Below, piece after piece: positions 16,725 to 50,982 of a DNA stretch of 64,000 nt (its first letter is position 1; each line of letters begins with the position of its first letter). A program made the translations under genes and the position numbers. The DNA is taken from NCBI GenBank assembly GCA_038496445.1, contig JALMLS010000480.1:62001-126000 (forward strand). The letters are read 5' to 3'. The notes under the pieces are model-generated. The model ran no database searches and had not been told where the DNA came from. It saw only the letters and a program-made list of their open reading frames with translations. Origin of the DNA: Trichosphaerium sp. ATCC 40318. Lineage: Eukaryota; Protista; Tubulinea.

Positions 16725-18132
16725 CGTCTTGCCTGAAACGAAGTGAACCTAAAACACAATGTGAGAATAAAGAATCAAGAATAAATAGAAAGAAGAGCCC
16801 ATACAGTACATGGTCTTGAAAGAGATGCATTTGGTAAAGCAAGTGTGAGGAAGTGTTGTAATAGAGTCATGTGTCTGGACATTATTGATCGTAATATTTT
16901 CTAATGTGTCACGTGATAACCCGCATTCAGAGAAATTCCTCAAAAATCTTCGTCTTTTTTGCCCATTTATTTGTGCTTATGGACACATGCTATACGTTTA
17001 GGTTTTACGTACGAAAGTTTGGTAAACGGCATTGCCTGGCGTTACATTGACGCCAAAAAAAATCACGTGTAGTACTCTATAGTTATTGATATATAGCAAC
17101 AGAAACCTTTTTAAATATCTCTGATGTTTACTAAAAAAAATCTCACCAAATTGAGATTATTCAATGGTGGAATACTCGCTTATGGAAATATGTACACATT
17201 GTAAATCCTAATAGGAGCCAGTCTACTTTGGTTATGCAAAACATAATGAAAAGGGGAGCGAAGAAGTTGTCTACACAACTTAAAATTAATGTAGTTTTTT
17301 GGCAATAAGTATTTAAAGCCATTTTTTCTCCTCTTGTTCGAAAACTCTTTTGTAACAACAGATTTAAATAATCACGTGACTACCTTGGCAAACTGCTTAG
17401 TAACAACTTTTTTAACCTCAATTGCGTTTGCTAAAGCCTTTCTACCATGACATACTGTCTGAGTGCTACAATATAGTTTGAACCATCCGTGTTACTACTA
17501 GGAGTAAAAATAGATTAAAATGATGACGCTATTGCCAAAAAACTACAATTGCTTGTTTAAGTCTTGTACACAACTCCCTCGCTACCCTTTCACTACAATT
17601 GGCATCTATCAATACATAGAGTGTGTAAACTGAATTCGTATTAGGATTTGAAGTGAGCGCAGCATATAATTTCCTTAACTTTCTTTGAAAAATATTTGAA
17701 CTATCTGTGAGCTGCTTAAAACAGCCTTCTACATTCCTCATATATCTCTCTATACTCCAATAATATCCTCACGTGTATTAGGGGTTATGGTCGTTAATTT
17801 TACGTCAATATCACGCCACCAAAGCTGTATTGTGTACTACTTTCGCGTTTGCCAACAAAAATGTATATCAGGCCTGTGTTAGCGCAATAAAGACTATAAG
17901 AGTTAACGTCGTTTTGTTTGATTCTCTGAATGTGGGTTATCACGTGACACATTAGAAAATATTACGATCAAAAATGTCCAGACACATGACTCTATTACAA
18001 CACTTCCTCACAATTGCTTTGCCAAATGCATCTCTTTCAAGACCATGTACTGTATGGCTCTTCTTTCTAGTTATTCTCGAGTTCTGTGCATTCTCAATAA
18101 TTGTTTAGGTTCACTTTGTTTCAGGCAATATA

Positions 18133-19152
18133 ATGAATGGATGGCTTGTTTATCTCGATCAACAAAGTACTCAAGTATTGTTAAATCATGGAAAAAGTGT
18201 TGCTTCAACTGTTAGAAATGCATATGACTTTTGTATACGTTCTACTATAACTGTATGTTCACAAAAAAACCTCACAAACATTAATGGTTTTAGAAAAAGA
18301 GAATGGCATTCAGAAAGCGTGTATTCGGCGGAGTAAGGATGAATGAATTTGTTATATATCACCCATATGGTCCTAACATGTCTGCACCATACCTCGCTTC
18401 ACAATACGCAAACATTAAACATTACAAATTGTCAGGTAACAAACTTTTACAGTACTTCACTCGCTGTCAGTTTGTGCTTACTTTTTGGTCTAGGATTCTC
18501 ACATGTTGAGTACATTGATGAACCCATAGTACAGGTTGATAACATGGACGACATCGATACTTATAACAGGGTGTTTTTTAACCCTCAACTTGATGACAAT
18601 ATAACAATACCAATACGAGAGCTACAAGTGTCCCAACAGCAAACTGGTGAACACATGAATGACGTCAATCCTTACAATAGCTTCTTTTTTGACCCTCTTG
18701 ATAACTATACAACAACTGCAATACGAGAGCTACAAGTGTACCAACAACCTTATCAAACAGATGAACACATGAATGACGTCAATCCTTATAACATAGTCTG
18801 TTGTAACCCTCAACTTGATGACGATACAATAATACCAATGCAAGAGCTAAAAGTGTCTCAACAGCCTTATGACACTGTTGAATATAATGCATCTCAATAC
18901 AACGCTTTCCAAAACGATTTCAACCATAACATGACACTCAATGACCATTACCATCAGTTCACTCAGTTCAGCGATGAAGGCAATGTTCCTGAACAGCAAA
19001 GTGCACTTGACTATGACAGTAGTGATACATTTGAGTACATGATGGTTCAACTTCAACAACTAGACGAACGGTGCCTACAGCTGAAGTCAGTGCCTTACAA
19101 TCCTAAATACGAAACTGTTTTTGATCCAGACTTAATGTGTATGAACTTGTGA
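18133..19152 (+). CDS. Inverted paralog (copy B) of 15528-16724
   Basis: Same ATG, exon structure and 39-aa repeats; shorter, different C-terminus. Confidence 0.7.
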
Positions 19153-23461: not shown

Positions 23462-24088
23462 CTAAAGCACATTACAATGTACTTGCTTCAGATTCCAATG
23501 TTTGGATTCTACTTCCCGGCTTCCATTGATGTAGTTACATTGCTTATACATTATACCACTAAGTGTCCACGCCTTGTACTCTCCTTGAACTATGCCAGCA
23601 ATATAACTACAATGCTCTTCTATTTGACCATTCCTGTACCATCGCTTACACACTCCTTCTTTTTTATTATTAGCATAAACACAAATAGTCTTTGTAGTGC
23701 CACAACTATACCAAGCCTTCCACTCTCCTTCAAGGACACCATTAACACAATGAAACTGCGCTTGTAATTGACCATTGCTGTGCCAAACTCTCCATTCTCC
23801 ATCATCCTTACCAGCTACAAAGCTACCTTGTACTTCAATTTGACCGCTTTTAAACCAGGACTTATACTCTCCATGCTGCTTACCATTGTTCCAACATTCT
23901 TGGCAAACAACCCTTGAAGCTGACACACTTTGTTTGAGCCATGTGCCATGTTTCTTCAAGTCATCTGTGAACCTTGTTGTAGTTGCTGTGTGCTTAGACA
24001 ATAGTGGCCACTTGTAGTACACTTCAAAGTCAATATCGATGATACCAAGCTGTAATTCGGTTGGAAGATTAAATAGATAAGTGTTCAT
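23462..24088 (-). CDS. Intronless F-box-like + MORN_2 repeat protein
   Basis: FNLPTELQLGII...WPLLSK; ~6 repeats such as NGKQHGEYKSWFKSGQI. Confidence 0.85.
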   Translation of the reverse strand: MNTYLFNLPTELQLGIIDIDFEVYYKWPLLSKHTATTTRFTDDLKKHGTWLKQSVSASRVVCQECWNNGKQHGEYKSWFKSGQIEVQGSFVAGKDDGEWRVWHSNGQLQAQFHCVNGVLEGEWKAWYSCGTTKTICVYANNKKEGVCKRWYRNGQIEEHCSYIAGIVQGEYKAWTLSGIMYKQCNYINGSREVESKHWNLKQVHCNVL

Positions 24089-25563: not shown

Positions 25564-28500
25564 TTACTTGTACGTTATAAAGTTCTTCATGTTTTCAACT
25601 GAATAAGTTGTAAAATCACTTGCTATTACATGTTGATTTGGAGCTACACGTGGATCAACAAAAAAAAAAAAGATGTCAGGATTATACCTTTCCTTACAAC
25701 TGCCATCTTCGTCATCGGAGGGTTCGATAGTTTAAACTGGTTCTTCCAATTTGATAGTTTGTATTGGTTCTTCCATAAAAAATCTGTGACTGATATTTCT
25801 TGACTTGGTACACGAGTGTACTGTGAGAAACAACAAAGTTAGCAATCACTTAATATGAAATCTGTTTTACAATAAGCAGAAAGACGCACTAGCATATTTG
25901 TTATTGGTAATGGCACTTGCATGCTTTGTACAGGAAAGTTCTTGAACCAAAGAGGTTTCCAAAACGCATTTTTCATGCAAACTCTACGATAGTACTTGCT
26001 TGTACTACCAAGCTGACATAAACAATATGCATCTAGAAAGTCCACAACCTGTAGCTTAATCTCGTATGGCATTTCTTCAAAAAGCTAAGAACATTAACTC
26101 CATTAGCGTAACATTTAGGTTGAACAACTTTATGTTGTGCTGAAACGCTGTTTTCCTCAGATCAAAAACAACGTACTGTGAACTTCAATGACAAATTATA
26201 GCTTTTAAGCCAAAGAATAAAGTTAAATCGAGATCCAGAAGTCAAAGCTTTTGTTGAATGCACTCGATATCCTGGATGGACAATAGCATAGCAAGGTCTA
26301 TGACCGACAATAACATCTGATTCATTTTCTTTTGAGAAAACCAACTCTCCACCTAAACAACAGGGTTGAGCTACTGAAGCAAAGCTGTTATCACTTTCAA
26401 CAAGTGGACGTAATACCGAATCTTAGAGTATAAATAACGATAAAGAATACTTTAATCACATGGTTTGGAAGTACTTTTATACTTTAATCACGTGGTTTGG
26501 AAGTGTACCATAACAAATTTTAACAAAAAAGCTTGAAAAAAATACCTGTGAATGTTTGTCCTAAACATAGGTTCACTGTGTAATCAGAGTCATCAACATG
26601 TACAGGATGTTGAATGTCGCCATTCATATTATAGTGAACAATCATTCCAACAGTGCCTTTTAATACTTCGTGTTCAGAAAGACCATAAAGTTTATGTATC
26701 AACTTCCCAATAATATCACCACTCACGCTCTAAACAAATCAGTATTTACAATTGTATGTACGTAAATATTGTTTGCATTGAAGCGTGTATTGTGGCATAC
26801 CTTGATAAAGTTTGAGAATCCAAATTCATTCAAGATAAGACCATCTTTGTTCAACTTTTGACGACTTTTATCAATATTTAAAGCTTCGTGAATCAACATC
26901 CTGGCACATTGCTTTCCTATCAACTCAAAAGCGTATACATCTTCATCATGCGTTTCTACAATATCTGTTGGTGATATACCAGCCTTCATAGAGGTAACAG
27001 CAGGGCATTGACTCATGTTTGCAGCGAAAAAATTAAGCATGTTTGGATGGAGTGCTGTGAACTTGGATGCGAAATTGGATGCGAAATTGGATGTATTGAA
27101 GAGCGGTGGGATTGTAAGTTTATAAGAGGGTACGTCACGTCTTGGAAGGGTATTATGGGTTCCTTTTTTTTTGTTAGCTGTGTCAAGAAAAGAAATCAAG
27201 AAAAAAATAAGAAACTCACCTTTTGGGTCAAAGGTCATAACAATGAGTTTACTCTCGTTGTTGTTGGTTGATACTGAAAGCAGATTATTTTCAAAACCAG
27301 CAAAAGATGTGAGATATACTTCTTGCCATAACCAGAGTGGTTTGAGTTGAGTTGTAGATACACAACACAAGTCGCCACCAAAAAAACCATCGACATTGAA
27401 CCTTCTGTGAACAGAGTACAAAATGTAAGACTAATGTTATTGTTCTGTATTGTGTACTTTTCTTGTTCTGTCAAGAATATGTGTACATCTTTATAAATAT
27501 GCTGTGAGGTTATTCGCGTACCTATAGCTTGAAAACAATTTGTTGGGCGCTAATGAAAAGTAAACCCTTGAAAAAAAAAAGAGAAACGATGATTATAATG
27601 ACATACATGTTGTTCAATAAACGGATACCCATCTCGTTCAACTATGACTTCTCTGAAAGTATACATTATGCAAGACCCAGTAAAAGGCAGATTTACACTT
27701 GCGCATGAAACACCTTTCGTATTTAGAGCCTATCAAAATAACTTAGAGAATGAAACTGAAACAACTAAAAAACCCTTACAACCATCCAGTTTTTGTGAGC
27801 ATCTGTTATCCAGAACAACCTACCAACACACTGTACGGATCCATTAAACTTTATGTAAGATTTGCTACATGAATGTATTAGAAATAATTTAAAAGCAATT
27901 TCTGGATGAGCACGTGCGTGGTAGAGTTCAAACAAGAAAGGGTATTCAAGTTGAATAACCAAGTTTGTGATAAAGATATAAGCAATACATCATCGATTAT
28001 CCCAACATCACCAAACCTTTCAACTTTTTTATCGTAATCATGTGGTACCTATTCATTAAAAAATTATCATATATTGGCTTCAAAAGGGGTGATGTTAATA
28101 AATTATGGTGAGTACATTGATATCCTTGCAAACACGTGATTTCAAATAAAGAATCTTTGGAGGATGGCTTTGAACACAAAAAACAAACGCATCGTCCTTC
28201 CAAAAAGCAGCTGCACATATTCCAAAGCAGTCCGATGAGTCTTTGGCATTGAACGCAGACTCTCCTTTCACTGGATCAAAGTCACTCTTCGTCAAAATGT
28301 GTACGCGCCTAATCAGAATAAAAAGTCAAAAAAAAACACGTGTAAAATTTCAACCGTTTTTTTTGAAAAATGTGTTTCAGAAAACGATAACTCACAAGGT
28401 TGATATTATAGCCATAGACTCGCAACTGTCCGAGAATACTATTTTGGTGTATCTTTCTTTGTTTGTCTTGTTTGGTATCTTTAAAGTATTGATAACACTC

Positions 28501-28728
28501 CAATCATCGCCCTTAGCATCGTATATCGTTACATTAGCACATACAACAGACGATACTAAACTGTTTGTTTTGTCTTGTGTCACACAAACAGCATATTTTT
28601 CGCAGAGGCCTTAATCAGTAAGTACCTAAGCATATTGAAGCGTTTCTACTTGTACCTATAGCTTCAATAACGCAATTTAAAGTAATTTTAAGCTCCTTTA
28701 TGTCAAACTTTCCACAACGAAATGTCAT
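25564..28728 (-). CDS. OGFOD2/ICU11-like 2OG-Fe(II) dioxygenase - F-box fusion, copy 1
   Basis: HPVHVDDSDYTVNLCLG..GGELVF..HPGYRVH..SGSRFNFILWLKS spliced via intron 26085-26176 to LFEEMPYEIKLQVVDFLDAYCLCQLGSTSK. Confidence 0.8.
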
Positions 28729-29644
28729 TGATCTTTCGAAATTGTGGTTATGTAGTATTAACCGAACTTTAGCGTCAGGTTGTGTTATGTTTATTGGATA
28801 CAAGGCTTATCAGCATTAAGTTACAAGTTCGTTTGCTCCCGAATTTGGCTCGCACATAAGTCATCGTAGTTTGAGGCCTGGTGCAGGCTGATCCTAAGTA
28901 CAATGGACGAGATGCAGGGATTTCTCTTTACAACGTGTCATCCCTGGCAAACTCGGCAAAAGTTTGACAAAAATCAAAAAGAAGGGCGGAAACTCATCAA
29001 TACCAAACGTGAGATCTACTGATAACAACGGGTACCAGGGGCTAGCGAGGTGAAAGTTCGCCAGTGTTCATAAATACATTGAATTGTGTGTCTGAAAACG
29101 ATGCTGACGTGTATACTCAATACCAGTTAATAGCTGTTCGAGATATCCAATAAATAAATAAAGAAAAAAGTAAGACGCTTACCTATAGCATTTATGAGTA
29201 TCACCAAGCTATTGTTCTAAGATAAGCATGTGAGACTTGTTCCTTTCTCTTTTTGTAATAGAGAATAAGGTCTTGTTTAGAAAGTCTGTATTCCTCTTTC
29301 CTTTTAAAACATAGCATTTTTGTCCTTATTTGGTCAATGGACAACGGGTATTACTGATGCGCTTTGCAATTGCTATTCAGCATCAATTGATGTTTCACCT
29401 TTTTCGTGTAGGAGGTATAGCTGAGAAAGTTATTAGAAGCTCTGTTTGGTTTGAAAGAAAAAAACAGATTTCTTCTCGCAAAAATTTTCAGCGAGTGACT
29501 TTGGCCATTTTAGTCAACTTTTTTCTAAACTCAAGCATTCTTAGAGGGCGCGTGGCTTGTCTGTTATAAGTTTTTTGAACATGGCTAGTACGTTATCAAG
29601 CACTTGAAGCTATGTTTAATTAAAAAAAACCACGTGTTAATTTT

Positions 29645-32065
29645 ATGAGCGTAAAATACTTTTAAAACGAATTTACTCACCTCCTAGCGCGTATTAACGC
29701 ATCAAATATTATTCTGCTTGCCGGTATAGTTATTGGTGTATTTTTAATTTATCAGACAATATCTTTATCACGTGATCAAAGCATCTCTGTTCAAAAAGTA
29801 TGCTCTGGAGATAAATTTAAAGAAGAATATGCTGAGGACTCTTACGCGTTTATATCTGATCTAGAAAAGCGATTGCAAGATGTTATAGACGCAGGAGGTT
29901 TTAAAGAACGTATGTTAGAGCTTCAAAAGAACGAAAGCGTTCCCGTTTCACTCATGGCACGTGTACAGAAACAAGCTTCAATTTTTAGTACTTACGAAAA
30001 AATAGGAAGACTATCAAAACGCTTTAGCGCCATTCCTTGAAGTCGAGGTACGTTTTCTATAATTGAAAATAGATCACATGATTGCGTGCATCATAAACAT
30101 TGGTTTCTAATACCAGCATAGCCTCCAGCTCCTATGAAGGTGACACAAAGACCTATTCCGCTATCAGAAGGTTTGGATTGTGGCAGGTATTCTGCTATTC
30201 TTACTGGTAAGAAGCGCGATAAACCTGTGAAGGTAATATATCAGTAATTTACGCATTGCAACAATACCTTCTTTTCAAAAAGCTTTGAGAAGCTTGACGT
30301 TACAAAAATGGAACCAAAGAAATTTAAGCTCTTATTTAAACTTAACTGAACCTTAGGTTTACGATCTTGTTACTTTTTCAACTGAGCTTGACCTTCTTGA
30401 AGTAAGAATGCATGAATTGAACGAAAGTGTCGATCATTTTGTTGTTTCCGAAGCATCTTGGACTCATAGAAGAGTGCCAAAGCCGCTGTACTTTGCGAGA
30501 AACAGAGAAAGGTAATTTTTCCAAAAAGAAAAAAAAATGTTGTTTAAGTCAAAGTAACGTAACGTCACCACGTGACTGAAAATATATGTAATATCTACAA
30601 CCTTTACTTTTAAAATCACGCCATTACACTTTTTTCGTAGGCAGTATCATTTTAATACAGTGGAAGCCTTTTCTTGTGAAGTTTTTGTTACTCCGAATTT
30701 CTTCTTTTCCTAACTGACTTGAACGCCAGATACATAAAATTCCGTGATAAGATTATACATTTAGTCATTGATTACTCTGCGTTTGGCCATCTTGTTAATG
30801 GTAGGAAAATACATCAAACTGGCGGAATCCTATGGTAATATAACTTGTTGTCAAAACTATATTTCTAACAAATAAGGACGTTTGAAGAAACACATAGAAA
30901 AGCAACACAGAAAAGATTCGAAGAAGGTACAAACAAATAAACCTCTACACTATTTTGTGTATCATCTATAGATACACTAAAATTACACTGTAACCTTAAT
31001 TTTGAGAGGTTTTTAACACGAAGTTTTTACAATCTTTACAAAAACGTGTTCTGGTGTTCACCTGTTTTTACCAAGGTCACGGACAATTTGAACCTGATGC
31101 TATAGTTATTGATGGTGACGTAGATGAGATACCTACAGGCACGCTACATCAAACTCATATCACTTGTTACAAACGAGAAAAAAAGTCAAAGTCTCATTTC
31201 TGTTCAAGGTCATTTTATTTACCATCTTAAACATTGTGAAACAAAATCGGAGTTTGACACTGTTATCATAAATAATAACTTGTTTTACTTTAACTTCCGT
31301 TGGGTTAAACGTAATAATTGGCAACAACCTGCTGTCACATTAAATAATAACGTCAAAAGATTTCAGAGAGGTTTAGCATACAAAGACGGGTAACCAACTT
31401 TTTTCACCACTTTTATTTTTTTATTTTTCTCTTGTTGAGCACAGAACTTCTTGTCTAAGATACCAGCTTTGTTTTCATCACTATTACTGAACTCTATATT
31501 AAGGCGTTGTTCATTGGTAATGGTAAAAAATCCTATTTGTTGGCATATATCGTATTATGGTAATGTAACTTTTGGGGTCTTATCGTTTTTCATCTGAAAA
31601 ATTTATGCCACCTGATTCAAACGTGGGACTAATTGTCAAGTAGGTAATCCAGCTTTTTTGATGTGGAAAAGTTTATCAATAGCAGAGGTACATATAAAAC
31701 TACTTTGTTCCAAACAGTCTGCTTCCCTGAGAAAAGATTTTGATTGAAAAAAAATCTAGGGTGGCAAAATCCATAAAGAAATCTTCAATGTTAAGAAAGT
31801 ACGGGAATCACGTGAACTGGGCGAAATGTTTTATGTTCAGTTATCTCATGAAGAACAATATAAAGTAGAGATATCATGGGAGAGTGATAAATTAGAAAAT
31901 CCAATATCAATGCCATGGGTGGTATTCCACAACCCCAAGGTACCTATTTTTCTTTCAATAATATTACTTTTTTGTGTTCTCTCAGACTGGTGGAGAACAA
32001 CCTCCTTGGAATGCTTTATTTGTATATCTACAACAACACCGTAACATCATCTCAGCATTTCCTTA
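29645..32065 (+). CDS. GT17 family beta-1,4-N-acetylglucosaminyltransferase (MGAT3-like), type II membrane protein
   Basis: N-terminal TM; VYDLVTFSTELDLLEVRMHELNESVDHFVVSEAS..H...KPLYF; IVIDGDVDEIP (DxD). Confidence 0.85.
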
Positions 32066-32483
32066 AAACTGATACACAACACCAGCACGGTTCTTGCAAT
32101 TTTATTAAATTTCCTGATTTTTCTGGATGGGAGAGTGCTTTCATTACTAACCTTTCTTTAGCGGTACCCTTTCTTGATGGAAGGTATATCTGATGTGGTT
32201 CGTCATAAGTACTTTGTATCCACATAGCTATCAAGAAATTCCACGTGTACAATTCGAAATATGCCATAACAGCTGTTGTGAACAAATTAATAAAAAAACC
32301 AGTGTTCTCATCTACTGGTAGTCTAACCTAGACGTTACTCTGCAAGTCTTTCATCTTGAATCATCACTCTGACAAGAACCGAAAACCGTGATGCACGTGT
32401 TTCACTAAACGCTGACTTAATCAAGTAGCACTCGTCCAGCATTTGTTAACATCAGTAAATACCCACGACACCGAAAGATCACA

Positions 32484-35400
32484 ATGGCATTTCGTTGTGG
32501 AAAGTTTGACATAAAGGAGCTTAAAATTACTTCAAATTGCGTTATTGAAGCTATAGGTACTTGTAGAAACGCTTCAATATGCTTAGGTACTTACTGATGA
32601 AGGCCTCTGCGAAAAATATGCTGTTTGTGTGACACAAGACAACACAAACAGTTCGGCGTCTGTATTTGATGTTGTATGCGCTAATGTAACGATATACGAT
32701 GCTAAGGGCGATGATTGGAGTGTTATCAATACTTTAAAGATACCAAACCAGACAAACAAAGAAAGATACACCAAAATAGTATTCTCGGACAGTTGCGAGT
32801 CTATAGCTATAATATCAACCATGTGAGTCGCTTTCATGAAGCCGAAATCGGCGAACCTGTTTTTTTTGACTTTTTTTTTGTTTTAGGTGTGTTCATATCT
32901 TGACGAACAATGACTTTGATCCGAGGAATGGTACATCCACGTTCAATGCCAAAGATGCATTGAACTACATTTCAACTCATGGAGCTGCGTTTTGGAAGGA
33001 CGATGCCTTTGTTTTTTGCAGTAAACGTCATCCTCCAAAGATTCTTTATTTGAAATCACGTGTTTGCAAGGATATCAATGTACTCACCATAATTTATTAA
33101 CATCACCCCTTTTGAAGCCAATATATGATAATTTTTAAATGAATAGGTACCACGTGATTACGATAAAAAAGTTGATAGGTTTGGTGATGTTGGGATAATC
33201 GATGATGTATTGCTTATATCTTTAACATATACTTGGTTATTCAACTTGAATACCCTTTCTTGTTTGAACCCTACCACGCACGTGCTCAACATGTGTTAAT
33301 ATTTCTCTAACACCTAGCCAAAGAAAATCATATATAAGGTTTAATGGAGTCATTAATTGCGTTGATTCGTTGTTTTGGATCACGGATGTCCACCAAAATA
33401 AGATAGTTGTAAGTTTTCTATTTTTTCAAAACCTATTTCTAATTGTATTTTGATAGGCACTGAATAAGAAAGGTGGTACAGAAAAAAATACGCCTATACC
33501 TTTTACTGGAGCTCAGACAGTGAATACATTCAGGGAAGTCATAGTTGAACGAGAAGGGTATCCATTTATTGAAGAACACGTATGTCATTAAAGCAACTTT
33601 TTTAGGTTTAACTTTGAATTAGCGCCCAAATAACTGGTTTAAGGCCATAGGTTCCCATATAAACTCGCAGCATATCTGTAAAGATCTACACATATTCTTG
33701 ACAGAAAAAGAAAAGCACGTGATTAAGAACAATATAAACAATTAGCTGACATTTTCGTTCAGAATATACAATGTTGATGGACTTTACGGAGGTGACTTGT
33801 GTTGTGTATCTACAACTCAACTCAAACCATTCTGGTTATGGCAAGAAGTATATCTCACATCTTTTGTTGGTTTTGAAAATAAGCTGCTTTCAGTATCAAC
33901 CAATAACAACGAGAGCAAACTCATTGTTATGACCTTTGACCCAAAAGGTGAGTTTCTTATTTTTTTCTTTGATTCTAAATGTTTCTCGACTCCACTCATA
34001 GCTAACTGTATAAGGAAAAATTAATACCCTTCCAAGACGTGATGACGTACCCTCGTTTAACCTTTCAAAAGTCAAGTTTAACAGATACAGCTTCACACCA
34101 CTTCATCCAAACATACTTAATTTTTTCGCTGCAAACATGAGTCAATGCCCTGCTGTTACCTCTATGAAGGCTGGTATATCACCAAAAGATATTGTAGAAA
34201 CGCATGATGAAGATATATACGCTTTTGAGTTGATAGGAAAGCAATGTGCCAGGATGTTGATTAAAGAAGCTTTAAATATTGATAAAGGTTGTCAAAAGTT
34301 GAACAAAGATGGTCTTATTTTGAATGAATTTGGGTTCTCAAACTTTATCAAGGTATGCGAGAATACACTTGTAACCTTCGTTAAAGCAAATAATATTCTT
34401 ACATATTTCTATAGAGTGTGAGTGGTGATATTATTGGGAAGTTGATACATAAACTTTATGGTCTTTCTGAACACGAAGTATTAAAAGGCACTGTTGGAAT
34501 GATTGTTCACTACAATATGAATGGCGACATTCAACATCCTGTACATGTTGATGACTCTGATTATACAGTGAACCTATGTTTAGGACAAACATTCACAGGT
34601 ACTTTTTTTCAAGCTTTTTTGTTAAAAGTTTTTTGGTACACTTCCAAACCACGTGATCAAAGTATTCTTTATCGCTATTTATACTTTAAGTATTTGGTAT
34701 TATGTCCACTTGTTGAAAGTGATAACAGCTTTGCTTCAGTAGCTCAACCCTGTTGTTTAGGTGGAGAGTTGGTTTTCTCAAAAGAAAATGAATCAGATGT
34801 TATTGTCGGTCATAGACCTTGCTATGCTATTGTCCATCCAGGATATCGAGTGCATTCAACAACATCTTTGACTTCTGGATATCGATTCAACTTTATTCTT
34901 TGGCTTAAAAGCTACAACTTGTCATTGAAGTTCACAGTACGTTTTTGATCTGAGGAAAACAGCATTTCAACACAACATAAAGTTGTTCAACCTAGCGCTA
35001 ATGGAGTTAATGTTCTATAGATTTTTGAAGAAATGCCATATGAGATTAGGCTCCATGTAGTAGATTACCTTGATGCGTATGCGCTTTGTCAGCTTGGTAG
35101 TGTGAGCAAGTACTATCGCAAAGTCTGCAGTAAAAATGAGTATTGGAAACCTGTTTGGTACAAGAAATTTTCCAAAGACAAGCTTGTAGCGCCACCAAAT
35201 GCTCATGTTAACATACCAAAGGCACGTACTAGTACAATTAGAAGCACCTGTGCTAAAGACAGAAGTTCTAACTTTTTTTTAACCGTAGGAAGAAAATCCA
35301 TTGGAGCGATCTGCTTGGTTCCAGCAGCCAGTTCAACAAGGTGAACAACTCCAAACTCTTCCTGTCCAAAGCATGCAAGTACAAGCAACACAAACATTGC

Positions 35401-35746
35401 AGAAAAAAGGGCTGGTATGTATTTCTAATTTACTACTACCTTTGTCAACTAATTTGAGTTATTAAGACAAGAGCAGTGGGTGTCTCACAGTACAACCTTT
35501 ATCATCTACCAATTGATGAAGAATCTGTTACAAACTGGAAAAAACAGTATAAAATATCAAAGACACACAAGCCTTTTAATAAGCCTTTGATACAGAGGAA
35601 GGTCGCTGTTATGAAAGGTATGGTTTTTTTTCTTTATGTTTTTTTTCATAATGTTTATCATGTTCTTAGCTCCAGACATTATAACAGCAAAGAGTTTTAC
35701 AGATTATTCAGTGACCAACATGAAGAACTTTGTAACGTACAAGTGA
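32484..35746 (+). CDS. 2OG-Fe(II) dioxygenase - F-box fusion, copy 2
   Basis: Same exon structure; HVD..H..R motif intact; intron 34937-35020 joins in frame to IFEEMPYEIRLHVVDYLDAYALCQLGSVSK. Confidence 0.8.
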
Positions 35747-36307
35747 TAGTACTATGTAGTACAGGCAGGAATGTAATGTGATCACTTAGCAAGCACCTGC
35801 AATACATAGACAACAATTTTATCTCTGTTCCATTTATTTTCTCAATGTTTCCATATTAACTTTTGAGGAGTTGATGTTAAGATGACACGTGTTTTTTCCA
35901 AGTAAAAAAGAGATTCGTCTCTTGTGATAGTGACCTAAAAAGATTCAATTCTGCGGAAAATTAAAAACACCGCACCTTCTTTCCTTTGGTATTCCGCATA
36001 GGAATACTATGCTACAAAAGATGATACATTATTGTATGTCATGGATACGCACAGCTTAAGCGTGCAAAAGTGGTATACTAAGAATTTGTGCTCTTTTGGT
36101 CACTTTTTATTCCTCTGGCAGCTTGAACCTGATAGTTGCTTAGTACCTTCCAGTTCGCTAGCAACATGACTTCGTTCAATATCAATGCGCACAGTGCTAT
36201 GCAGAAAATCACAAAACAGCAGTAGCGCTAGTGCGAACGTAACTTAACACGTATGTACCAACTGTCATTGTGCTTCTTTTCAAACACGCAGCAACTCAAG
36301 CGGAATA

Positions 36308-37384
36308 ATGGTTAGTCGTAATATCCCGAAGCTCTATATCTGATGCTCCCTAGAATTGTAATACGAGGCTTATTATTGTACTGGTATGTTTTACCACAGT
36401 GGCTTTATGGTACGATCCCATCACGTGATTTTTAAAACAGTCTTTTGTTTTAGCCGTACATCATTCCCTGCTGGTATGACATGGCAAATACAGCTTCAAG
36501 ATACCATTGTAACTTCGTACAACGGTAAGTGAACACTTTTTTCTTGTCTTTCCTTGTTTTTGGTAAGTAGCGGACTAATAATTTTCCGCTAGTTGATATG
36601 TATGACATCGACCTCTTCGATACACCTCAGTCGGTCATTGACAGCCTTCATAACGCTGGTCGTAAAGTAGTATGTTACTTTAGTGCAGGATCTTATGAAA
36701 ACTGGAGAAGTGATGCTGGAAGTTTTCCATCAAGTGTCTTGGGAAGTCCGTTAAGTGGTTGGCCTGGTGAAAAATGGCTTGACATCCGACAAGTATGAGT
36801 TTCTTTAATTTCGCTTCATCTCATCTCACCTATGTCATATAAGATCTCCACTCTTGCTCCTATTATGCGAGCTAGACTTCAACTTGCAAAGAACAAACGA
36901 TGTGACGCTGTTGATCCCGATAACGTTGACGCTTACACGAACCCAAGTGGTAATCTCATTTTCTCATTCAAACGTTGCTCTAAGATCTACCACAGGTTTT
37001 CCTTTAACGAAATCACACCAACTGGCTTACAACAGATGGATGGCTACTGAAGCACACAATCTCGACTTATCGATAGGTCTTAAAAACGGACCTGAACAAG
37101 CTGCAGACTTAGTGAATTACTACGACTTTGTTGTTAATGAACAGTGCAGACAATACAATGAATGTGGGTCATACTCTCCTTTTATTAACCAGAATAAAGC
37201 TGTATTTCAAATAGAGTATAGCGGAGGGGTAAATGCAATTTGTAACCATGCTGCTTCATTTGGTCATTCGTACGTGGTTTCCAATCTTTTATATTCACGT
37301 GTCTTGATATTGACCATGGTTTGACAATTTTTTAGAGGTCTCAAGAAGAGACTTGACTTGAAATCATGGGTTAGATTCTGCTAG
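36308..37384 (+). CDS. Secreted GH114 endo-alpha-1,4-polygalactosaminidase-like hydrolase
   Basis: Signal peptide; TWQIQLQ, YDIDLFD, VVCYFSAGSYENWR, WPGEKWLDIR, CDAVDPDNVDAY, IGLKN, EQC; clean GT-AG introns. Confidence 0.9.
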
Positions 37385-37844
37385 TCTTTTAAATAAAAAA
37401 TGATTATGAAATGTTAACCTTGTTCAGACCTTTGCTGAGACATTTAGACCAAACGGATACCCTTTTTTGAGCGTTGAAAACTACCCTTTTGCGTTTTTAG
37501 GTGCTGTACTTTTTTCTGTCTGTTTTACTCTACAGCGTGTATAATGCGCTTCCCAAGTACACAAAACATGTATTTCGTAGTTCTAACAGCGACACATATG
37601 AACTATAGTGGAAGGGTTGCAAAATCATACTTAACTTTAGGCAGTTGGATGTTGAAGCAACGTTGCACTTACATTAGTTTTGTGCGTTCACACTCCACAC
37701 ATTCTGGTTTGCAAACATGTTTTTAAGCCAGTAACTATAGGCGGCAAAATAGAATCTAGCGCCAATTCAAAGAAACCTTCTTAAGAAATTCTACTTAAGT
37801 TTCAGCTAACAATACGCTACCCCGAAGCCTTATTTTGACAATAG

Positions 37845-38460
37845 TTGATACCTATGAGAAATCACAAGGAGGTAAAAAAGTATGGCTCTTATAGATCACC
37901 ATATAAGAAAGCTGCAGGTAGAAAAAAAGGAAATTGTTGGATAGTGAATATACTAGAAAGGCATGTTAGGAGAAAAGATGGTAATATTGCCAGTGTTAGA
38001 CCTTCTCGAATCTATGATGCATTTTCTCAAAGAAATACACAATATCATCCTAGTTGGTTTGAAGGGTTACCGCCTACTATGATCCGAGATGCAATAGAGA
38101 ATTTATTGATAAGTGAACAACCTTTTCTTCCTGTTCTTGTGTAAGTAAAGCACTGTCCAATCAACACAAGGTATCAATGTACAGTTGCTATTTATAAACC
38201 AGATAGTATACGCACCAGGTTAAAGCAATATTTCAATAATACTAAGCAGCAAAGTCATGCAAGAGATATTCCGATTAACAAAGTTGATGAGATTGCAACA
38301 TGGGCTATTGAAAATAAAAAGATATTGGCTTCAAATATTAATGCTGGAAGAAGAGAAGTATTGGGAACATTACTATCAATGAATTCCCTTGTTTCAGGGA
38401 AGTATTGTAAGGAATGGTTATAGTGGCTTGATGACCGGATGCATAGAGTTTTCTAAACTA
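37845..38460 (+). pseudogene. Stop-interrupted intronless ORF, probable transposable-element relic
   Basis: Frame continues through isolated stops for ~200 codons; no diagnostic motif. Confidence 0.3.
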
Positions 38461-38599
38461 ATGAGCTTGAACCAGCTTGTATAAAGTACGTTAATGACTC
38501 AACTCCGACTTGACTGTTGAAAAAAAATAAACGGTTTGACTTTGACTTCAGTCATCGTTAATAGTATAAACCAACAATGGGTGTTTGACTCGGAAATGT

Positions 38600-38800
38600 G
38601 GCATTTTTTTGAATAGTTTTGAGCTTTTGGTTTGATTTGATGACAATAGCTTTTCTATTTATATCCGACGTGTTGCGATCGTTTTTAATAATGTTTTTGA
38701 ACGGGACGCATAGACAGGTGAAACGAATGTACAATCATATAAGAATAACTTCAACAGGTGTATCATTTAAACTGGCTATCGTTCATTGGCTCAGAGTCAT
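38600..38800 (-). pseudogene. F-box relic related to the 49975-50982 gene
   Basis: SLNDTPVEVIL vs FFDEIPVEVIV; shared acttcaacaggt core. Confidence 0.45.
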
Positions 38801-39395
38801 ATAAAAATTAATACAGGAATTTACAGCTTGTCGTAAAGTAGACAGTTGCTTAACCAGATCTTAAACACACTAAGAAAAAAATAAGAAAACGTGCTGTAAG
38901 CCAGAACATCTTTTGGGTCTCGGTTTAATATTATTAATTTGAAGAACTTTATAGTTCTGTCTGCTTTGGCGTATGTACCCTATATAAGACATCTTTCATA
39001 GTTTCTTCCATCAGAGGATGTTCTACCAATGAAACCGTTTCTGATCGCTGAACTGAAGCAAAGATCTTGAAATCTGACATTACTTTCTTGGATTGGTCAA
39101 CGGCCACCCTTCTTTATAATACAAGGAGTCAAGCAATAGAAAAGTGGTTGCATATGTAAGCCGCCAGAAGCTTTTTTTCATATGCGTTAAATCTACAAGT
39201 TGAGTGAAAGTGACATTATTTTAATGAGCCAATTTTTGTTTTGGCTTTCATTTTTAACCATGGTATTTAGGAAGCTACCTAAAAAACGGGGTATGTCGTG
39301 TTAACATTCTGTGAAATCGGGCATTCATAGGACTAACTACACATAAACAAAAATTGATGAGATTTCTAACCTAACAATAAGGATTTAACGCCACA

Positions 39396-39795
39396 ATGAA
39401 CACCTTTTCTTCAAAAACTATGCTATCATTGACCACTATCTTCGCTGTATTGATGTTTGTATGTCCAGTAGCAGGAAATAGCGAAGAGGAAGAAGCATGT
39501 ATTGGTAAATGGTGCTCAAAACTCTACCAAAAGGCTAACGGTGGTACTGGAACTTTTTGTTCTGATACATGGGGTTCATGCCCACAAAACTCTTATGATG
39601 ATGTACGTGCATTGTCAGGAAGTTTACAAGCTATGTATACACTTACAATTGTGCTAGTTCTATCAAATTGAAAACAAGAGAAAGTGTGGTAAACGATGCA
39701 ATCAGAGAAAGCCAAGTGCTGGAAGATGTAACCATCATGATGGCACTATGTTGTCCGATGGCCTTCCTAGGCTTCTCCGCTTTGAATGCAGATAA
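39396..39795 (+). CDS. Small secreted Cys-rich protein (2 exons)
   Basis: Signal peptide to ..VAG; CIGKWC..FCSDTWGSC..YDD|FYQIENKRKCGKRC..GRC..ECR*. Confidence 0.55.
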
Positions 39796-40089
39796 GCAAT
39801 ACGCTGTGGTAATGATGCTCGGATAATGTGATGTTTGTACTCTGAGACCACTTGTTGCGAAACCAATATTATGATTTCATCAGTTTGTCGTTTTACTTCG
39901 AGATTTCTCAGCTAAAAAAAAAATGTTATGATTGACCAATATTTTCGTTGTTAGCAGGATGGCCTAGTCAGTAAGTTTACATGCCAGTATCCATCAAAAA
40001 ACGTAGTATTACACATAACCAAAGTGAAGCTAAAAAACTGTTGACTTGAATGGGTAGTTTACGTAGGTGCTAGTAAATAGTCACTCACC

Positions 40090-40490
40090 AGAGTAGCCGA
40101 ATGATGTAAGCTGTACAAACTACTTGTTTTTACTGGTTAACATACACTGCCACGCTTTAGTGCTGATACATTCATAGCATCAAGAGGTGTGTAAAAGGGG
40201 AAACTGTATTTAAAAGAGCTCAAAGTATCTCTGGAGGGGATATTGTGGTAGGTAACCAAACTATAAATGTACAATAACATAATAGTTTGGGTTTTAAAAA
40301 CACGTGGTCTAGTGTAAATTCATACTTTCTCCGTCCAGCAAGCTTCCAATAACGTGAATCACATTTAAAACGTTGGTCAATCTGCTCGTTCTAGCAAAAT
40401 TGCCAGTTCTTATTGCAAGAATCTGCTAAACTCGAAACCAAAGTCACAAACAGCAAAAAGTTGCAAAGTTTTGCAAACTTGAATGATACA
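40090..40490. mobile_element. Partial inverted copy of the TIR element at 24695-25405
   Basis: Reverse-complement matches to 24700-25120 (e.g. gctcaaagtatctctg, ctagcaaaattgccagttct). Confidence 0.7.
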
Positions 40491-40877
40491 ATACTCAACC
40501 TGACTGGTTCGCTTTATTACCTCACGACGTGCTAAACAACCAAAGGGTTACCTTAGTCTTGCATATAGTATCTGGCACTTCACACAGTATTACGAAGGTA
40601 GACGAGGGCGGTTTTGTTTCCTGGGTTTTCTTTTGACTCTGTCAAACTTTTGTACCAGTTTGCCAGAGACGCCGTGTAAAGAGAAATCCCTGCATCTCGT
40701 CCATTGTACTTGAGGATCAGCCTGCACGTGGCTTCAAACTACGATGACTTATGTGCGAGGCAAATTCGGGAGCAAACGAACTTGTAACTTAATGCTGGTA
40801 AGCCTTGTATCCAATAAACATAACAACCTGATGCTAAAGTTCAGTTAATACTACATAACCACGACTTCAAAAGATCA

Positions 40878-43800
40878 ATGACATTTCGTTGTGGAAAGTT
40901 TGACATAAAGGAGCTTAAAATTACTTCAAATTGCGTTATTGAAGCTATAGGTACAAGTAGAAACGCTTCAATATGCTTAGGTACTTACTGATGAAGGCCT
41001 CTGCGAAAAATACGCTGTTTGTGTTACACAAGACAAAACAAACAGTTCAGCGTCTGTATTTGACGTTGTATGGGCTAATGTAACGATATATGATGCTAAG
41101 GGCGATGATTGGAGTGTTATCAATACTTTAAAGATACCAAACCAGACAAACAAAGAAAGATACACCAAAATAGTCTTTTCAAATAGTTGCGAGTCTATGG
41201 CTGTAATATCAACCTTGTGAGTTATCGTTTTCTGAAACACTTTTCAAAAAAAAAACGTTTGAATTTTACACGTGTTTTTTTGACTTTTTATTCTGATTAG
41301 GCGCGTACACATTTTGACGACGAGTGACTTTGATCCAGTGAAAGGAGTGTCTATGCTCAATGCTAAAGACTCATTGAAGTACCCTGGAACATGTGCAGCT
41401 GCTTTTTGGAAGGACGATGCCTTTATTTTTTGTAGTCAAAGTAATCCTCCAAAGATCCTTGATTTGAAATCACGTGTTTACAAGGATATCAATGTACGTT
41501 ATCACCCTCGCATTCCATACCCGTGTAAATAATACGATAATTTAGGTGCCCCTTTATGATAAAATAGTTAATAAGTTTGCACATGTTGGGATAATCGATG
41601 ATGTATTGCTTTTATCTTTATCACAAACTTGGTTATTCAACTTGAATACCCTTTCTTGTTTGAATTCGGCCATGCACGTGCTCATCCAAACTCTTTTTAA
41701 ATGTCTAATACGCATGTAGCAAATCTTACTTAAAGTTTAATGGATCCGTGCAGTGTGTTGGTAGGTTGTTTTGGATAACAGATGCTTACCAAAACCGGAT
41801 GGTTGTAAGGGTTTTTATTTGTTTCACTTCCCTTCTCTAAGTTATTTTGATAGGCTCTAAATACGAAAGGTGTTTCATGCGCAAGTGTAAATCTACCTTA
41901 TGCTGGGTCTTGTATAATGAATACTTTCAGGGAAGTCATAGTTGAACAAGATGGGTATCCGTTTATTGAACAACATGTATGTCATTATAAGCATCGTTTC
42001 TTTTTTTTTTCAAGGGTTTACTTTTAATTAGCGCCCAACAAATTGTTTTCAAGCTATGGGCACACGAATAACCTCACAGCATATTTATAAAGATGTACAC
42101 ATCTTCTTGACAGAACAAGAAAAGTACGCAATACAGAACAATAACAATAATCTTACCTTTTGTACCTTGTTCACAGAAGGTTCAATGTTGATGGTTTTTT
42201 TGGTGGCGACTTGTGTTGTGTATCTACAACTCAACTCAAACCACTCTGGTTATGGCAAGAAGTATATCTTACATCTTTTGTTGGTTTTGAAAATAAGCTG
42301 CTTTCAGTATCAACCAATAACAACGAGAGCAAACTCATTGTTATGACCTTTGACCCACAAGGTGAGTTTCTTAATTTTTTCTCGATTTCTTTTCTTGACA
42401 CAACTAACAACAAAAAAGGAACCCATGATACCCTTCGAAGACGTGATGACGTACCCTCCTATAGATTGGCAAAACCAACGCCCTTTGAACCATCCAAGTT
42501 AACAGCACTCCATCCAAACATACTTAATTTTTTCGCTGCAAACATGAGTCAATGCCCTGCTGTTACCTCTATGAAGTCTGGTATATCACCAACAGATATT
42601 GTCGAAAAACACAGCGAAGATGTATACGCTTTTCAGTTGATAGGAAAGCAATGTGCTAGGATGTTGATTCAAGAAGCTTTAAATATTGACAAGGGTCGTA
42701 AAAAGTTGAACAAAGATGGCCTTATCTTGAATGAATTTGGATTCTCAAACTTTATCAAGGTATGCCAAAATACACGCTTCAAAACAAACAGTATTTTCGT
42801 ACATACTATTTGTTTAGAGCGTGAGTGGTGATATTATTGGGAAGTTGATACATAAACTTTATGGTCTTTCTGAACACGAAGTATTAAAAGGCACTGTTGG
42901 AATGATTGTTCACTATAATATGAATGGCGACATTCAACATCCTGTACACGTTGATGACTCTGATTACACAGTGAACCTATGTTTAGGACGAACATTCACA
43001 GGTATTTTTTCAAGCTTTTTGTTAAAGTTTTTGGTACACTTCCAAACCACGTGATCAAAGTATTCGTCATCACAATCTATACTTTAAGTATTCGGTATTA
43101 CGTTCGCTTGTTGAAAGTTATAAGAGCTTTACTTCAGTAGCCTAACCCTGTTGTTTAGGTGGAGAGTTGGTTTTCTCAAAAGAAAATGAATCAGATGTTA
43201 TTGTCGGTCATAGACCTTGCTATGCTATTGTCCATCCAGGATATCGAGTGCATTCAACAACATCTTTGACTTCTGGATCTCGATTTAACTTTATTCTTTG
43301 GCTTAAAAGCTACAATTTGTCATTGAAGTTCACAGTAAGTTGTTTTTGATCTCAAGAAAACAACGTTTCAGCACAACATAAAGTTGTTCAACCTAAATGT
43401 TACGCTAATGGAGTTAATGTTCTATAGATTTTTGAAGAAATGCCATACGAGATTAGACTACAAGTAGTAGACTTTCTAGATGCATATTGTTTATGTCAGC
43501 TTGGTAGTGTGAGCAAGTACTATCGTAGAGTTTGCATGAAAAATGAGTATTGGAAACCTCTTTGGTTCAAGAACTTTCCCAAAGACAAGCTTGTGGCACC
43601 ACTAAATGGTCATGTTTATGTACCAAAGGTATTTACAAAACCTATAGAATAACCAGAAAATACAAATGAGTCTACTTAGAGTAACACCGCTTGCGGAGTA
43701 ATTTACAAATTTTCGGGCTCTAACTTTTTTTGAAGGAAGAAAATCCATTAGAGCGATCTGCTTGGTTCCAAAAACCAGTTCAACAAGGAGAAAAACTCCA

Positions 43801-44197
43801 AAATCTACCTGTACAAAGCATGCAAGTGCCATTACCAATAACAAATATGCTGGTGCGTCATTCTGCTTAATGTAAAAAAACCTTCTAATTAAGTGATTAC
43901 TAACTATTGTTTCTCAGCTAAATCATGTACTAAATCATGTACCAATTGAAGAAAGATCAGTTACAAATTGGAAGAAACAGTATAAAATATCAAAGGAGTA
44001 TAAACCGATTGAAACCCCTCCGATAATGATGAAGGCGGCAGTTGTAAGGAAAGGTATAATCCTTGCATCTTTTTTTTTTTGTTTGCTATTTAGGATTTTA
44101 AGTTTATCCACGTTTAGCTCCAAATAAATACGTAACAGCAAGTGATTTTACAACTTATTCAGTTGAAAACATGAAGAACTTTATAACATACAAGTAA
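40878..44197 (+). CDS. 2OG-Fe(II) dioxygenase - F-box fusion, copy 3 (1-nt shift in last exon)
   Basis: Intron 43335-43427 joins WLKSYNLSLKFT to IFEEMPYEIRLQVVDFLDAYCLCQLGSVSK; last exon lacks one T relative to copy 1. Confidence 0.8.
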
Positions 44198-46699: not shown

Positions 46700-48060
46700 C
46701 TAGTCACCAAAACTTTCATTCACATAAGCTTATTTGGGTAATCGCAGACGATGGCTTTGTTTACACGTGGGGACGAAACAATCGCGAACAATTGGGTGCT
46801 AGAGGCAAAATTCGGAGTTCTATACCTATACAAATAGAGTCACTCGTAAATATCGTATGCGTAGCTGCTGGACTTAACCACAGCCTTGCACTTAGTTCAA
46901 AGGGTATTGTTTATGCATGGGGTTGTAATAACAGGGGTGAATTGGGTATAGGAGAGGGCTCAGTACCTCATTCGTCGCCAATACTTATTCCTAATTTCTA
47001 CGAAATCGTTCAAGTTTCTGCCTATGACATAAGCATGGCGTTATCACAATCAGGCTGTGTCTACTCTTGGGGAAAAAATAACGATGATGTATTGGGTCAT
47101 TCGTATGACAAGCCTTCAGTTCTATCACCGACGCGCATTCCAGGGCTTGAAAAGGTTGAAAAAATTGAAACTAACAAGAATGTAAGTGGAGCAATAACAT
47201 CAAAAGGTCAAGTCTTTCTTTGGGGATCAACAAGATACAAGCAAATAGCTACGCATTTGTTCTTGCAATCACAGAAAATTTCGTGTGTTCCAAACATCTC
47301 AGATGCCTCTGATATTGCCATTGGTTTTTGGCATGTGCTTGTTCTATGGGTGTCTTGGGTTGGGCACTGATCTAGAGTATGAGGAGGGTACAATTGAAGG
47401 GCTCAATAACATCAAATCTGTACACGCTGGCTATCATACATCATTTGCAATTGATGATGAAGGTTGTTTGTTTGGTTGGGGCAAAGGGAAATGGATTGAG
47501 GAGTTCTCATCAAACAAACCAGTAACATTACCTGGAAAATATCTTGAGTTTGCAATTAAAGATAGAAAATCCTGGGCAATAACTCGCGAGTGTACATTGG
47601 TGTCAGGTGAGGAAGCAGTACTACAATTGACAAACAATCACCAAAAGGTACTTTTTGATATGCAACTACTGTTTATTTGACAACTATTTAGCGACCTTCC
47701 AAAGAAAAAGACGACATGAAAGTAATGCATGCACAGTTCAAAGAAGACCGAAAAGAGGTGCGTACATTCTTTTTAACTATTTTGTTTTTGAAATAAACAA
47801 AACCTTATTTAGTCGCAAACACAACCTCTAAATATTGATTGGACGTCATCATTTGCAAAGTTAGATATCACAAACAAGAAAGCACAAGCATTTGGATTAT
47901 ATATGAACGCATTACGTATTAAACCCGATGACGCCATTGACCAACACGTGCTAATTGCGCTCGGGGACATTTTGATGGAAGAATTAAAAAAAGTTACTGA
48001 ACCAAAGCAAAACAATTAGTGAACTCTCTAAAAGAGCTTGCGAGGAAACAGTTGTGTTGA
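46700..48060 (+). CDS. RCC1-repeat protein, possibly pseudogenised (frame break ~47345); start uncertain
   Basis: DGFVYTWGRNNREQLG, VAAGLNHSLAL, VYAWGCNNRGELG, VHAGYHTSFAI. Confidence 0.8.
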
Positions 48061-49974: not shown

Positions 49975-50982
49975 TTACTTTTTACGTGATCGAGTTAAAC
50001 GTTTAACAAAATCAATTGAAATACTCTCAACAAATGTTACAGAAGGAACACCCTCCAATGCTTTTATACCAGCTTCTGTAACTTGTTTACAACTATCCAC
50101 AACAATAGTATTAACTCCAGTTAATGCTTTGATACCATCATTTGTAACACTCTCGCAATGGCACAGTTTAATAGTATGAACACCAGACAACGCTTTGATA
50201 CCATCATCTGTAACATATGGCATGCATAAGTCAATTGTATGAACACCTGCTAGTGCTTTGATACCATCATTTGTAACACTATCGCAATGCCACATTTTAA
50301 TAGTATGAACACCGGACAACGCTTTGATACCATCATCTGTAACATAGTTACAACTACATATAGAAATTGTATGAACGCCAACCAATGCCTTAACACCATT
50401 GTCTGTAACACTACAGCCACTAAGTTTAATAGAATGAACACCAGCTAGTGCTTTAATACCATCGTCTGTAACCTTTGTACAATTTCTTAAGTCAATCGTG
50501 TGAACACCAGATAACGATCTAATACCGTCATCTGTCACTAATACGGCGTTCTGTAAAAAAATCTTGTGTACTCCAGCAAGTTGTACAAGGTGATAATCAG
50601 TAACATAATAATTACAGAGGTCAATACAGTTAACAATGTTGAGGTTTGTAAAATCAACTGTTAACAACATGTCTTTTCTCCAAAACCTTAGATTGTATGC
50701 TCCTTGTAGATACTTTAAATGCTTTTGTTTGATAGAGAATTGAAGAGTAATACTATTGGTGTGTATGAGGTGTGGTAGTTTTTTGAAGAGCTTTTTCAGC
50801 TTTTTTGGTGTTTTAAGGACGATATTTCTTCTGTTTACATATCCCACGTGATTTATTGCGATATTTGATAAAAGTTTCGATGTACGAACAACTGAGTGCA
50901 TAGTTAAGAGCGAAACGTATTGTAGAATATGAACAATGACTTCAACAGGTATCTCATCAAAGAATGCGCTGTTTTGGTTCAT
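49975..50982 (-). CDS. Intronless F-box/LRR protein
   Basis: FDEIPVEVIVHILQYV F-box; ~22-aa repeats LxGVHTIxLxxCxxVTDDGIKA. Confidence 0.9.
   Translation of the reverse strand: MNQNSAFFDEIPVEVIVHILQYVSLLTMHSVVRTSKLLSNIAINHVGYVNRRNIVLKTPKKLKKLFKKLPHLIHTNSITLQFSIKQKHLKYLQGAYNLRFWRKDMLLTVDFTNLNIVNCIDLCNYYVTDYHLVQLAGVHKIFLQNAVLVTDDGIRSLSGVHTIDLRNCTKVTDDGIKALAGVHSIKLSGCSVTDNGVKALVGVHTISICSCNYVTDDGIKALSGVHTIKMWHCDSVTNDGIKALAGVHTIDLCMPYVTDDGIKALSGVHTIKLCHCESVTNDGIKALTGVNTIVVDSCKQVTEAGIKALEGVPSVTFVESISIDFVKRLTRSRKK

Follow-up and report, generated by a model that had tools for sequence, protein, structure and literature searches.

Expressed fusions of an OGFOD2-class oxygenase with an F-box in Trichosphaerium sp. 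ATCC 40318, candidate Skp1-docked hydroxylases

This work concerns three genes, c1, c2 and c3, in a stretch of 64,000 nucleotides from Trichosphaerium sp. ATCC 40318 (contig JALMLS010000480.1, here C70, positions 62001-126000). The whole stretch is called the window, and positions are in window numbering unless preceded by C70, C3, C29, C137 or L022. Trichosphaerium is a marine amoeba (Amoebozoa). The genes are expressed and tandemly duplicated, each encoding a single protein of ~770 residues: a long N-terminal region, a 2-oxoglutarate (2OG)- and Fe(II)-dependent oxygenase module of the OGFOD2/ICU11 class, an F-box, and a short tail. By sequence and fold model, the module looks like an active protein hydroxylase. 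We tentatively favour a reading in which the F-box would dock this enzyme on Skp1, possibly within a Skp1-cullin-F-box (SCF) ligase, where it would act on a bound client.

That enzyme and F-box lie on a single polypeptide, as a first-pass annotation of this DNA had proposed, is supported by an RNA-derived sequence that spans their junction. P0001, a 327-aa peptide from the transcriptome of Trichosphaerium sp. ATCC 40318 (MMETSP0405), was the sole return of an all-library HMMER search with c3 exons 8 + 9. It is ~95% identical to c1 in six blocks that end exactly at predicted splice sites, five introns having been spliced out; at the phase-0 intron predicted between enzyme and F-box, its frame continues from ...SLKFT, where the dioxygenase exons end, into the F-box exon. 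The outcome named beforehand as incompatible with a fusion, transcripts ending at the unspliced stop, is not what the public transcriptome shows, P0001 being spliced through the junction. The peptide begins at an internal Met in exon 9 (c3 position 42544), and RNA support covers the last 327 residues, from exon 9 onward. P0001 is a mosaic of copy-specific residues and could represent an allele, or an assembly that is in part chimeric; the junctions are common to all copies, so its splice evidence is unaffected by the mosaic.

The gene models were derived from a 15-exon model of c3, for which a diverged copy, c5, was used to set exons off from unconserved introns; this model was then transferred to the other copies. 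Each exon was checked in its own phase, with only the 0-2 bases of split codons carried over.

40878-44197 (+): c3, complete gene; 15 exons, 777 codons without internal stop; 13 GT-AG introns and one GC-AG intron, 46-157 nt.
32484-35746 (+): c2, complete gene; 15 exons, 776 codons; model transferred via the five-copy alignment and refined.
25564-28728 (-): c1, complete gene; 14 exons, 741 codons; an in-frame deletion merges exons 12 and 13.
C70:12847-16184, outside the window: c0; uninterrupted open reading frame (ORF) of 770 codons, 79% identical.
C70:~129131-132393 (-), outside the window: c5; ~55-73% amino-acid identity, degenerate.

The limits first given for the three window genes are borne out, each gene forming one intact ORF. 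The uninterrupted ORFs of c3, c2, c1 and c0 have their intron positions in common, and this agreement across four ORFs is not due to chance. A family of three had been described; the three window genes are real, but a genome-wide search places five members on contig C70, c0 and c5 lying outside the window. Genes c1, c2 and c3 are paralogues with 80-89% nucleotide identity over ~3.3 kb, introns included, and c1 is inverted with respect to c2 and c3. An in-frame deletion of ~230 bp has cost c1 the end of its F-box exon, all of intron 12 and the first part of exon 13, with the conserved motif NPLERSAWFQ in it (merged exon 25890-26084); the same deletion is found in P0001, so the shortened copy is expressed. 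The assembly containing the window (70.3 Mb, ~36% G+C) is that of an intron-rich eukaryote; the published draft genome of Trichosphaerium is 70.87 Mb with 37.7% G+C, a mean intron of 75 bp and a mean exon of 154 bp (PMC10521059).

Introns measure 43-193 nt across the copies; two of them are listed here.

43335-43427 (+): c3 intron 11, at the dioxygenase/F-box junction; GT-AG, phase 0; c2 34937-35020, c1 26085-26176; spliced out in P0001.
41674-41719 (+): c3 intron 4, GC-AG with donor GCACGT; c2 33278-33323, c1 27865-27917; sole frame-keeping splice pair in all five copies.

The three phase-0 GT-AG junction introns are present as the first-pass annotation described them. The sequence of intron 11 is unconserved in c5, and both adjoining exons are conserved. 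For the exon 4/5 junction, a canonical GT-AG intron was tried and rejected, having no in-frame solution in any copy; GC-AG with GCACGT fits all five, including c5. The same donor recurs in intron 7 (c0 and c2; c2 33715-33762) and in intron 12 (c2; 35222-35288), where GTACGT has switched to GCACGT. A listed long ORF that had been taken as one exon contains an intron of 57-67 nt; this intron accounts for what looked like a frame break in c2.

The oxygenase module is encoded by three exons.

42419-42759 (+): c3 exon 9, variable linker and first half of the OGFOD2-like module; PF25238, E ~6e-6.
42818-43001 (+): c3 exon 10, HxD ligands (His 42947-42949, Asp 42953-42955); c2 34415-34598, c1 26546-26729.
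43159-43334 (+): c3 exon 11, distal His (43251-43253) and 2OG-binding Arg (43281-43283); c2 34761-34936, c1 26177-26352.

Its earlier assignment to the OGFOD2/ICU11 class is supported by the match to PF25238 (OGFOD2-like) and by alignments over the whole module. P0001 scores 30.6 bits (E 3.9e-7) against a curated cut-off of 31 bits, single exons reach 26-28 bits, and the precomputed database annotation of P0001 lists PF25238.2. Residues ~1-184 of P0001 align in BLASTP with PF25238 proteins over 185-205 columns (E 1e-11 to 5e-18), among them proteins named ICU11, OGFOD, and 2-oxoglutarate and iron-dependent oxygenase. The HxD...H facial triad and the basic 2OG residue (H116, D118, H165, R175), already noted in the window copies, are present in c0-c3, as are all other columns found invariant in alignments of 13 and 16 relatives (S120, T123, H159, G161, W181). 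The family motif PNSMH.YG upstream of the core is not kept: P-N-S-M is found in >=90% of relatives, R-Q-K-L in P0001 and the window copies.

The AlphaFold model of P0001 has a mean predicted local distance difference test score (pLDDT) of 65, rising to 80-90 across residues 20-190, the double-stranded beta-helix core. Its best Foldseek matches in the PDB are the lysyl hydroxylases human LH3 and mimivirus L230 (E ~1e-10; root-mean-square deviation 2.4 Å; template-modelling score 0.7 on L230), followed by PiuC, P4H and PHD2; matches to hydroxylases of the lysyl, prolyl and PKHD types span E values from 1e-10 to 1e-5. The best viral match among fold models is a PKHD-type hydroxylase of Hyperionvirus. 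To our knowledge, OGFOD2-class oxygenases have no established enzymatic substrate. ICU11 is known only as an accessory protein of PRC2 (PMC7368280).

Downstream of the enzyme lie the F-box and the tail.

43428-43628 (+): c3 exon 12, F-box; c2 35021-35221, c1 25890-26084 (merged exon).
43736-44197 (+): c3 exons 13-15, tail of ~110 residues; motifs NPLERSAWFQ...LPVQSM and C-terminal YS.xNMKxF.T.K.

The F-box had been recognised from the letters alone and proves bona fide by Pfam: PF12937 (F-box-like) is matched in 5/5 copies and in P0001 at 31.7-35 bits, with a cut-off of 24.3. It begins ~12 residues past the last enzyme strand, forms three helices in the fold model and has FBXO4 as its best sequence match in the PDB. 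The two tail motifs are nearly invariant, even in c5, the first one being missing from c1; the tail is predicted to be disordered in the P0001 model. In Pfam searches of the exons and of P0001, the F-box was followed by no LRR, WD40 or Kelch domain. Skp1 genes are present in the genome, one of them in the region C137:79701-79844, and the site NDFTPEEE, which we take to be the one hydroxylated in Dictyostelium, is conserved in them.

The remainder of the protein precedes the enzyme.

40878-42361 (+): c3 exons 1-8, N-terminal region of ~360 residues; no Pfam match, conserved in all five copies.

Pfam searches of every exon returned PF25238 and the F-box as the only matches. The all-library HMMER search detected no relative of the N-terminal part among 1.84 billion representatives (exons 8 + 9 gave P0001 only), no viral relatives of the N-terminal exons were found, and internal repeats did not show up when exons 2 and 8 were compared by hhalign. 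A language-model (Atlas) search provided a weak lead from this region to WD40-type beta-propellers, and the region is perhaps such a propeller. The exons are coding and conserved, with a ratio of nonsynonymous to synonymous substitution rates (dN/dS) of 0.26-0.45; the idea of a variable substrate binder finds no support in its simple form, selection here being purifying and not diversifying.

Every part of the protein has long been kept by selection, dN/dS being well below 1 in all regions. Against c0 (dS ~0.33 in all regions), dN/dS is 0.10-0.12 for the catalytic exons, 0.26-0.33 for the N-terminal exons and 0.12-0.36 for the F-box. Between c3 and c5 (dS ~1), it is 0.16-0.38 everywhere, with the minimum of 0.16 in the F-box; across the deepest split among the paralogues, no other part is as well conserved. 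Among c1, c2 and c3, the catalytic exons have a dS of 0.03-0.08, compared with 0.16-0.5 elsewhere. This near-identity runs into introns 10 and 11, which are 87-95% identical in pairs with c2, whereas most other introns are 58-77% identical (introns 1 and 3 are also high); it thus points to gene conversion.

42818-43427 (+), c3 positions: gene-conversion tract shared by c1, c2 and c3; exon 10, intron 10, exon 11 and intron 11, ending at the F-box exon.

Smaller conversion patches cover exons 1-2 and intron 3 to exon 4. The near-identity of the catalytic exons is mainly due to gene conversion, with strong purifying selection in addition. The difference that the first-pass annotation reported, a conserved core with more variable flanks, is real, but it largely reflects the conversion tract and is not by itself a sign of diversifying recognition surfaces. 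In c5, an 8-nt deletion shifts the frame in exon 9 and the triad is altered (H116D, D118E, H165P), while the F-box and tail motifs are kept; this copy either became a pseudogene recently or is a relative with a dead enzyme.

A second gene family in the same genome carries a homologous enzyme-F-box junction.

L022:4299-6700 (C70:~169.3-171.7 kb, 43 kb past the window): OGFOD2-type-F-box-RhoGEF gene; HxD exon, junction exon, and RhoGEF exon downstream.
C3:~549 kb: RhoGEF-family paralogue L024; homologous junction.
C29:~281 kb: RhoGEF-family paralogue L023; homologous junction, dead triad with Glu at the distal-His position.

In the first of these genes, the last enzyme strand and an F-box recognised by Pfam (34.7 bits) are encoded without interruption by a single exon (L022:5014-5226). 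The stretch that opens with the invariant Trp and closes with ...KFT (W.K......KFT) is 12 residues long in both L022 and the window family, 5/12 of them being identical. The two families are alike in enzyme class, domain order, short strand-to-F-box spacing and the L/M-P-x-E start of the F-box; the RhoGEF genes differ in having no long N-terminal region, a RhoGEF domain in place of the short tail and no junction intron, and their core identity to the window family is only ~40%. The enzyme-F-box module is probably older than the window family, two families having attached different partner domains to it; from the sequences, we consider it rather probable that the module arose once and later gained its different partners. 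The fusion was not known to the first-pass annotation. It is not unique: in the same genome, three or more OGFOD2-type-F-box-RhoGEF genes share a homologous junction, and JmjC/F-box proteins have been published (PMC2453528).

Five further OGFOD2-like loci of the genome (on C125, C1, C139, C4 and C26) have no F-box within ~3.5 kb. Among ~60 database relatives (queries P0001, P0001+P0002 and a 16-sequence profile), none but P0001 has an F-box; a metagenome scan with the RhoGEF-family junction exon gave no relatives, and a Protein Atlas search with P0001 no usable match. The literature search found no publication describing an F-box fusion of an OGFOD2-class or lysyl-hydroxylase-like enzyme. One further candidate, an F-box-LRR ORF at L022:1528-3150 preceded in frame by ~20 residues resembling the last enzyme strand, was set aside as too thin, the match being mostly to the F-box; the stretch could be left over from an ancestor with enzyme and F-box, or be a chance resemblance. 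Four viral loci (giant-virus metagenome contigs) encode stand-alone relatives of the enzyme, and the three ORFs read are of 193-209 aa and without F-box. A giant-virus origin was rejected as a supported claim: the three viral enzymes read are no closer than the cellular relatives, and the N-terminal exons have no viral relatives.

According to the reading that we favour, a Skp1 protein of this genome would be the docking partner of the F-box, which would bring a protein hydroxylase, active and dependent on O2 and 2OG, into an SCF-type or Skp1 complex; there it would hydroxylate a client bound by the N-terminal domain or the tail motifs, and that client could then be ubiquitinated. That an active hydroxylase is docked on Skp1/SCF and acts on a client bound to it is plausible, if somewhat short of probable. 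A stricter version, a self-contained oxygen-gated SCF receptor in which an N-terminally bound client is hydroxylated and only then ubiquitinated via the F-box, we regard as unlikely. Several points weigh against the docked hydroxylase as a whole. The predicted order, with the F-box C-terminal to the putative client-binding domain, is the reverse of that in most SCF receptors; with RNA covering the last 327 residues and P0001 starting at an internal Met, there may be a short isoform that lacks the N-terminal region. The replacement of PNSMH means that the substrate pocket may differ or that activity may be altered, and c5, which lacks the metal triad yet keeps F-box and tail, suggests that part of the function may not need catalysis. 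Finally, a great many different partners are joined to F-boxes in this genome (PMC10521059), and this fusion may accordingly say little about the chemistry of the enzyme.

One alternative takes Skp1 as a non-degradative scaffold: the F-box would recruit Skp1 structurally and place the hydroxylase in a complex, with no ubiquitination of a client. Skp1 is such a structural partner, via the F-box, of KDM2B within PRC1.1; enzyme first and F-box near the C-terminus is also the order of KDM2A/B, and no LRR, WD40 or Kelch domain follows the F-box. The plant relatives ICU11 and CP2, moreover, are accessory subunits of a chromatin complex and not ligase parts (PMC7368280). The present data fit SCF action equally well, however, and the conserved tail motifs could be client-binding; we hold the scaffold to be rather unlikely. 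Quite unlikely, in our estimate, is that the enzyme modifies the ligase itself, hydroxylating Skp1, a cullin or an F-box protein next to it and thereby opening a second route alongside PhyA, whose pathway of Skp1-prolyl hydroxylation is known in Dictyostelium. The retention of NDFTPEEE in the genome's Skp1 genes and the distance of only ~12 residues between enzyme and F-box would suit this role; the enzyme is OGFOD2-class and lysyl-hydroxylase-like, however, not PhyA/PHD-class, a large conserved N-terminal domain would be needless, and five paralogues for one invariant target would be odd.

The F-box might also serve self-turnover, making the hydroxylase short-lived by auto-ubiquitination and so tuning the level of the enzyme rather than targeting clients. 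Auto-ubiquitination is common among F-box proteins, and F-boxes are joined to many unrelated domains in this genome. Yet the F-box is the best-kept part over the dS ~1 split, and the enzyme-F-box module has been retained in two families with different partners, which argues for a specific joint function; we hold self-turnover to be improbable. A misreading of two adjacent genes, or of a decaying pseudogene family, as a fusion might be suspected from the unspliced frame, which stops few codons past the enzyme exon, and from the frameshift and dead triad of c5. For c1, it is already refuted by spliced P0001, which crosses the junction; four ORFs are intact, dN/dS is far below 1 throughout, and the RhoGEF sister family has the junction within a single exon, leaving an artefact extremely improbable.

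Should the genes encode a hydroxylation-gated SCF receptor, they would provide a first functional context for the orphan OGFOD2 class, which humans also carry. In any case, they offer a compact one-polypeptide system for testing hydroxylation-coupled ubiquitination. OGFOD2-class oxygenases range from humans to plants, and a selected, expressed F-box fusion in two families is a 'Rosetta stone' hint of a link to Skp1/SCF; its weight is lowered by the abundance of F-box fusions in this genome.

Other genes of the window were recorded as follows. MORN_2-variant repeat genes with F-box-like heads, one F-box-LRR gene and one RCC1-like gene (together at 13747-14358 (+), 23465-24088 (-), 51782-52978 (-), 49978-50982 (-) and 46792-47680 (+)) belong to expanded families that the genome paper counts as giant-virus transfers (PMC10521059). 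F-box and MORN are the commonest domains among the putative giant-virus-derived genes of Trichosphaerium (PMC10521059). A GH114 glycoside hydrolase exon lies between c2 and c3 at 36854-37321 (+) (Pfam 112 bits). Positions 15837-16934 and 17922-19015 form an inverted duplicate of a gene, with 86% identity over 1.1 kb; the gene contains internal repeats of ~38 residues rich in Q, N and D, and matches no Pfam family.

Among known systems, KDM2A/KDM2B (FBXL11/FBXL10) likewise combine, in one chain, a 2OG/Fe(II) oxygenase with an F-box that follows it, and this F-box binds SKP1. They have a JmjC demethylase fold with CXXC, PHD and LRR domains, whereas the window family is OGFOD2/lysyl-hydroxylase-like, and no exon nor P0001 gave a Pfam match to JmjC, CXXC, PHD or LRR. 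PhyA-Skp1 and PHD-VHL also couple hydroxylation to a cullin-RING ligase; there, the partners are separate proteins and the enzymes of the PHD class, whereas in the window family enzyme and F-box share one chain and the enzyme is of another class. The collagen lysyl hydroxylase domains of human LH3 and mimivirus L230 are the best structural match of the enzyme domain and a weak sequence match; at ~20% identity, from another family and without F-box, they give no inference on the substrate. OGFOD2 and Arabidopsis ICU11 and CP2 have the PF25238 module and the spacing of catalytic motifs in common with the window family, but are without F-box and hold the PNSMH motif that the window family has lost. 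A JMJD6-like JmjC domain with a single F-box is a recurring architecture in plants, fungi and protists (PMC2453528); these proteins, too, combine a hydroxylase-type 2OG oxygenase with an F-box, but they belong to the JmjC family, with no evidence of common descent. Fusion of a 2OG oxygenase to an F-box is thus known for the JmjC class.

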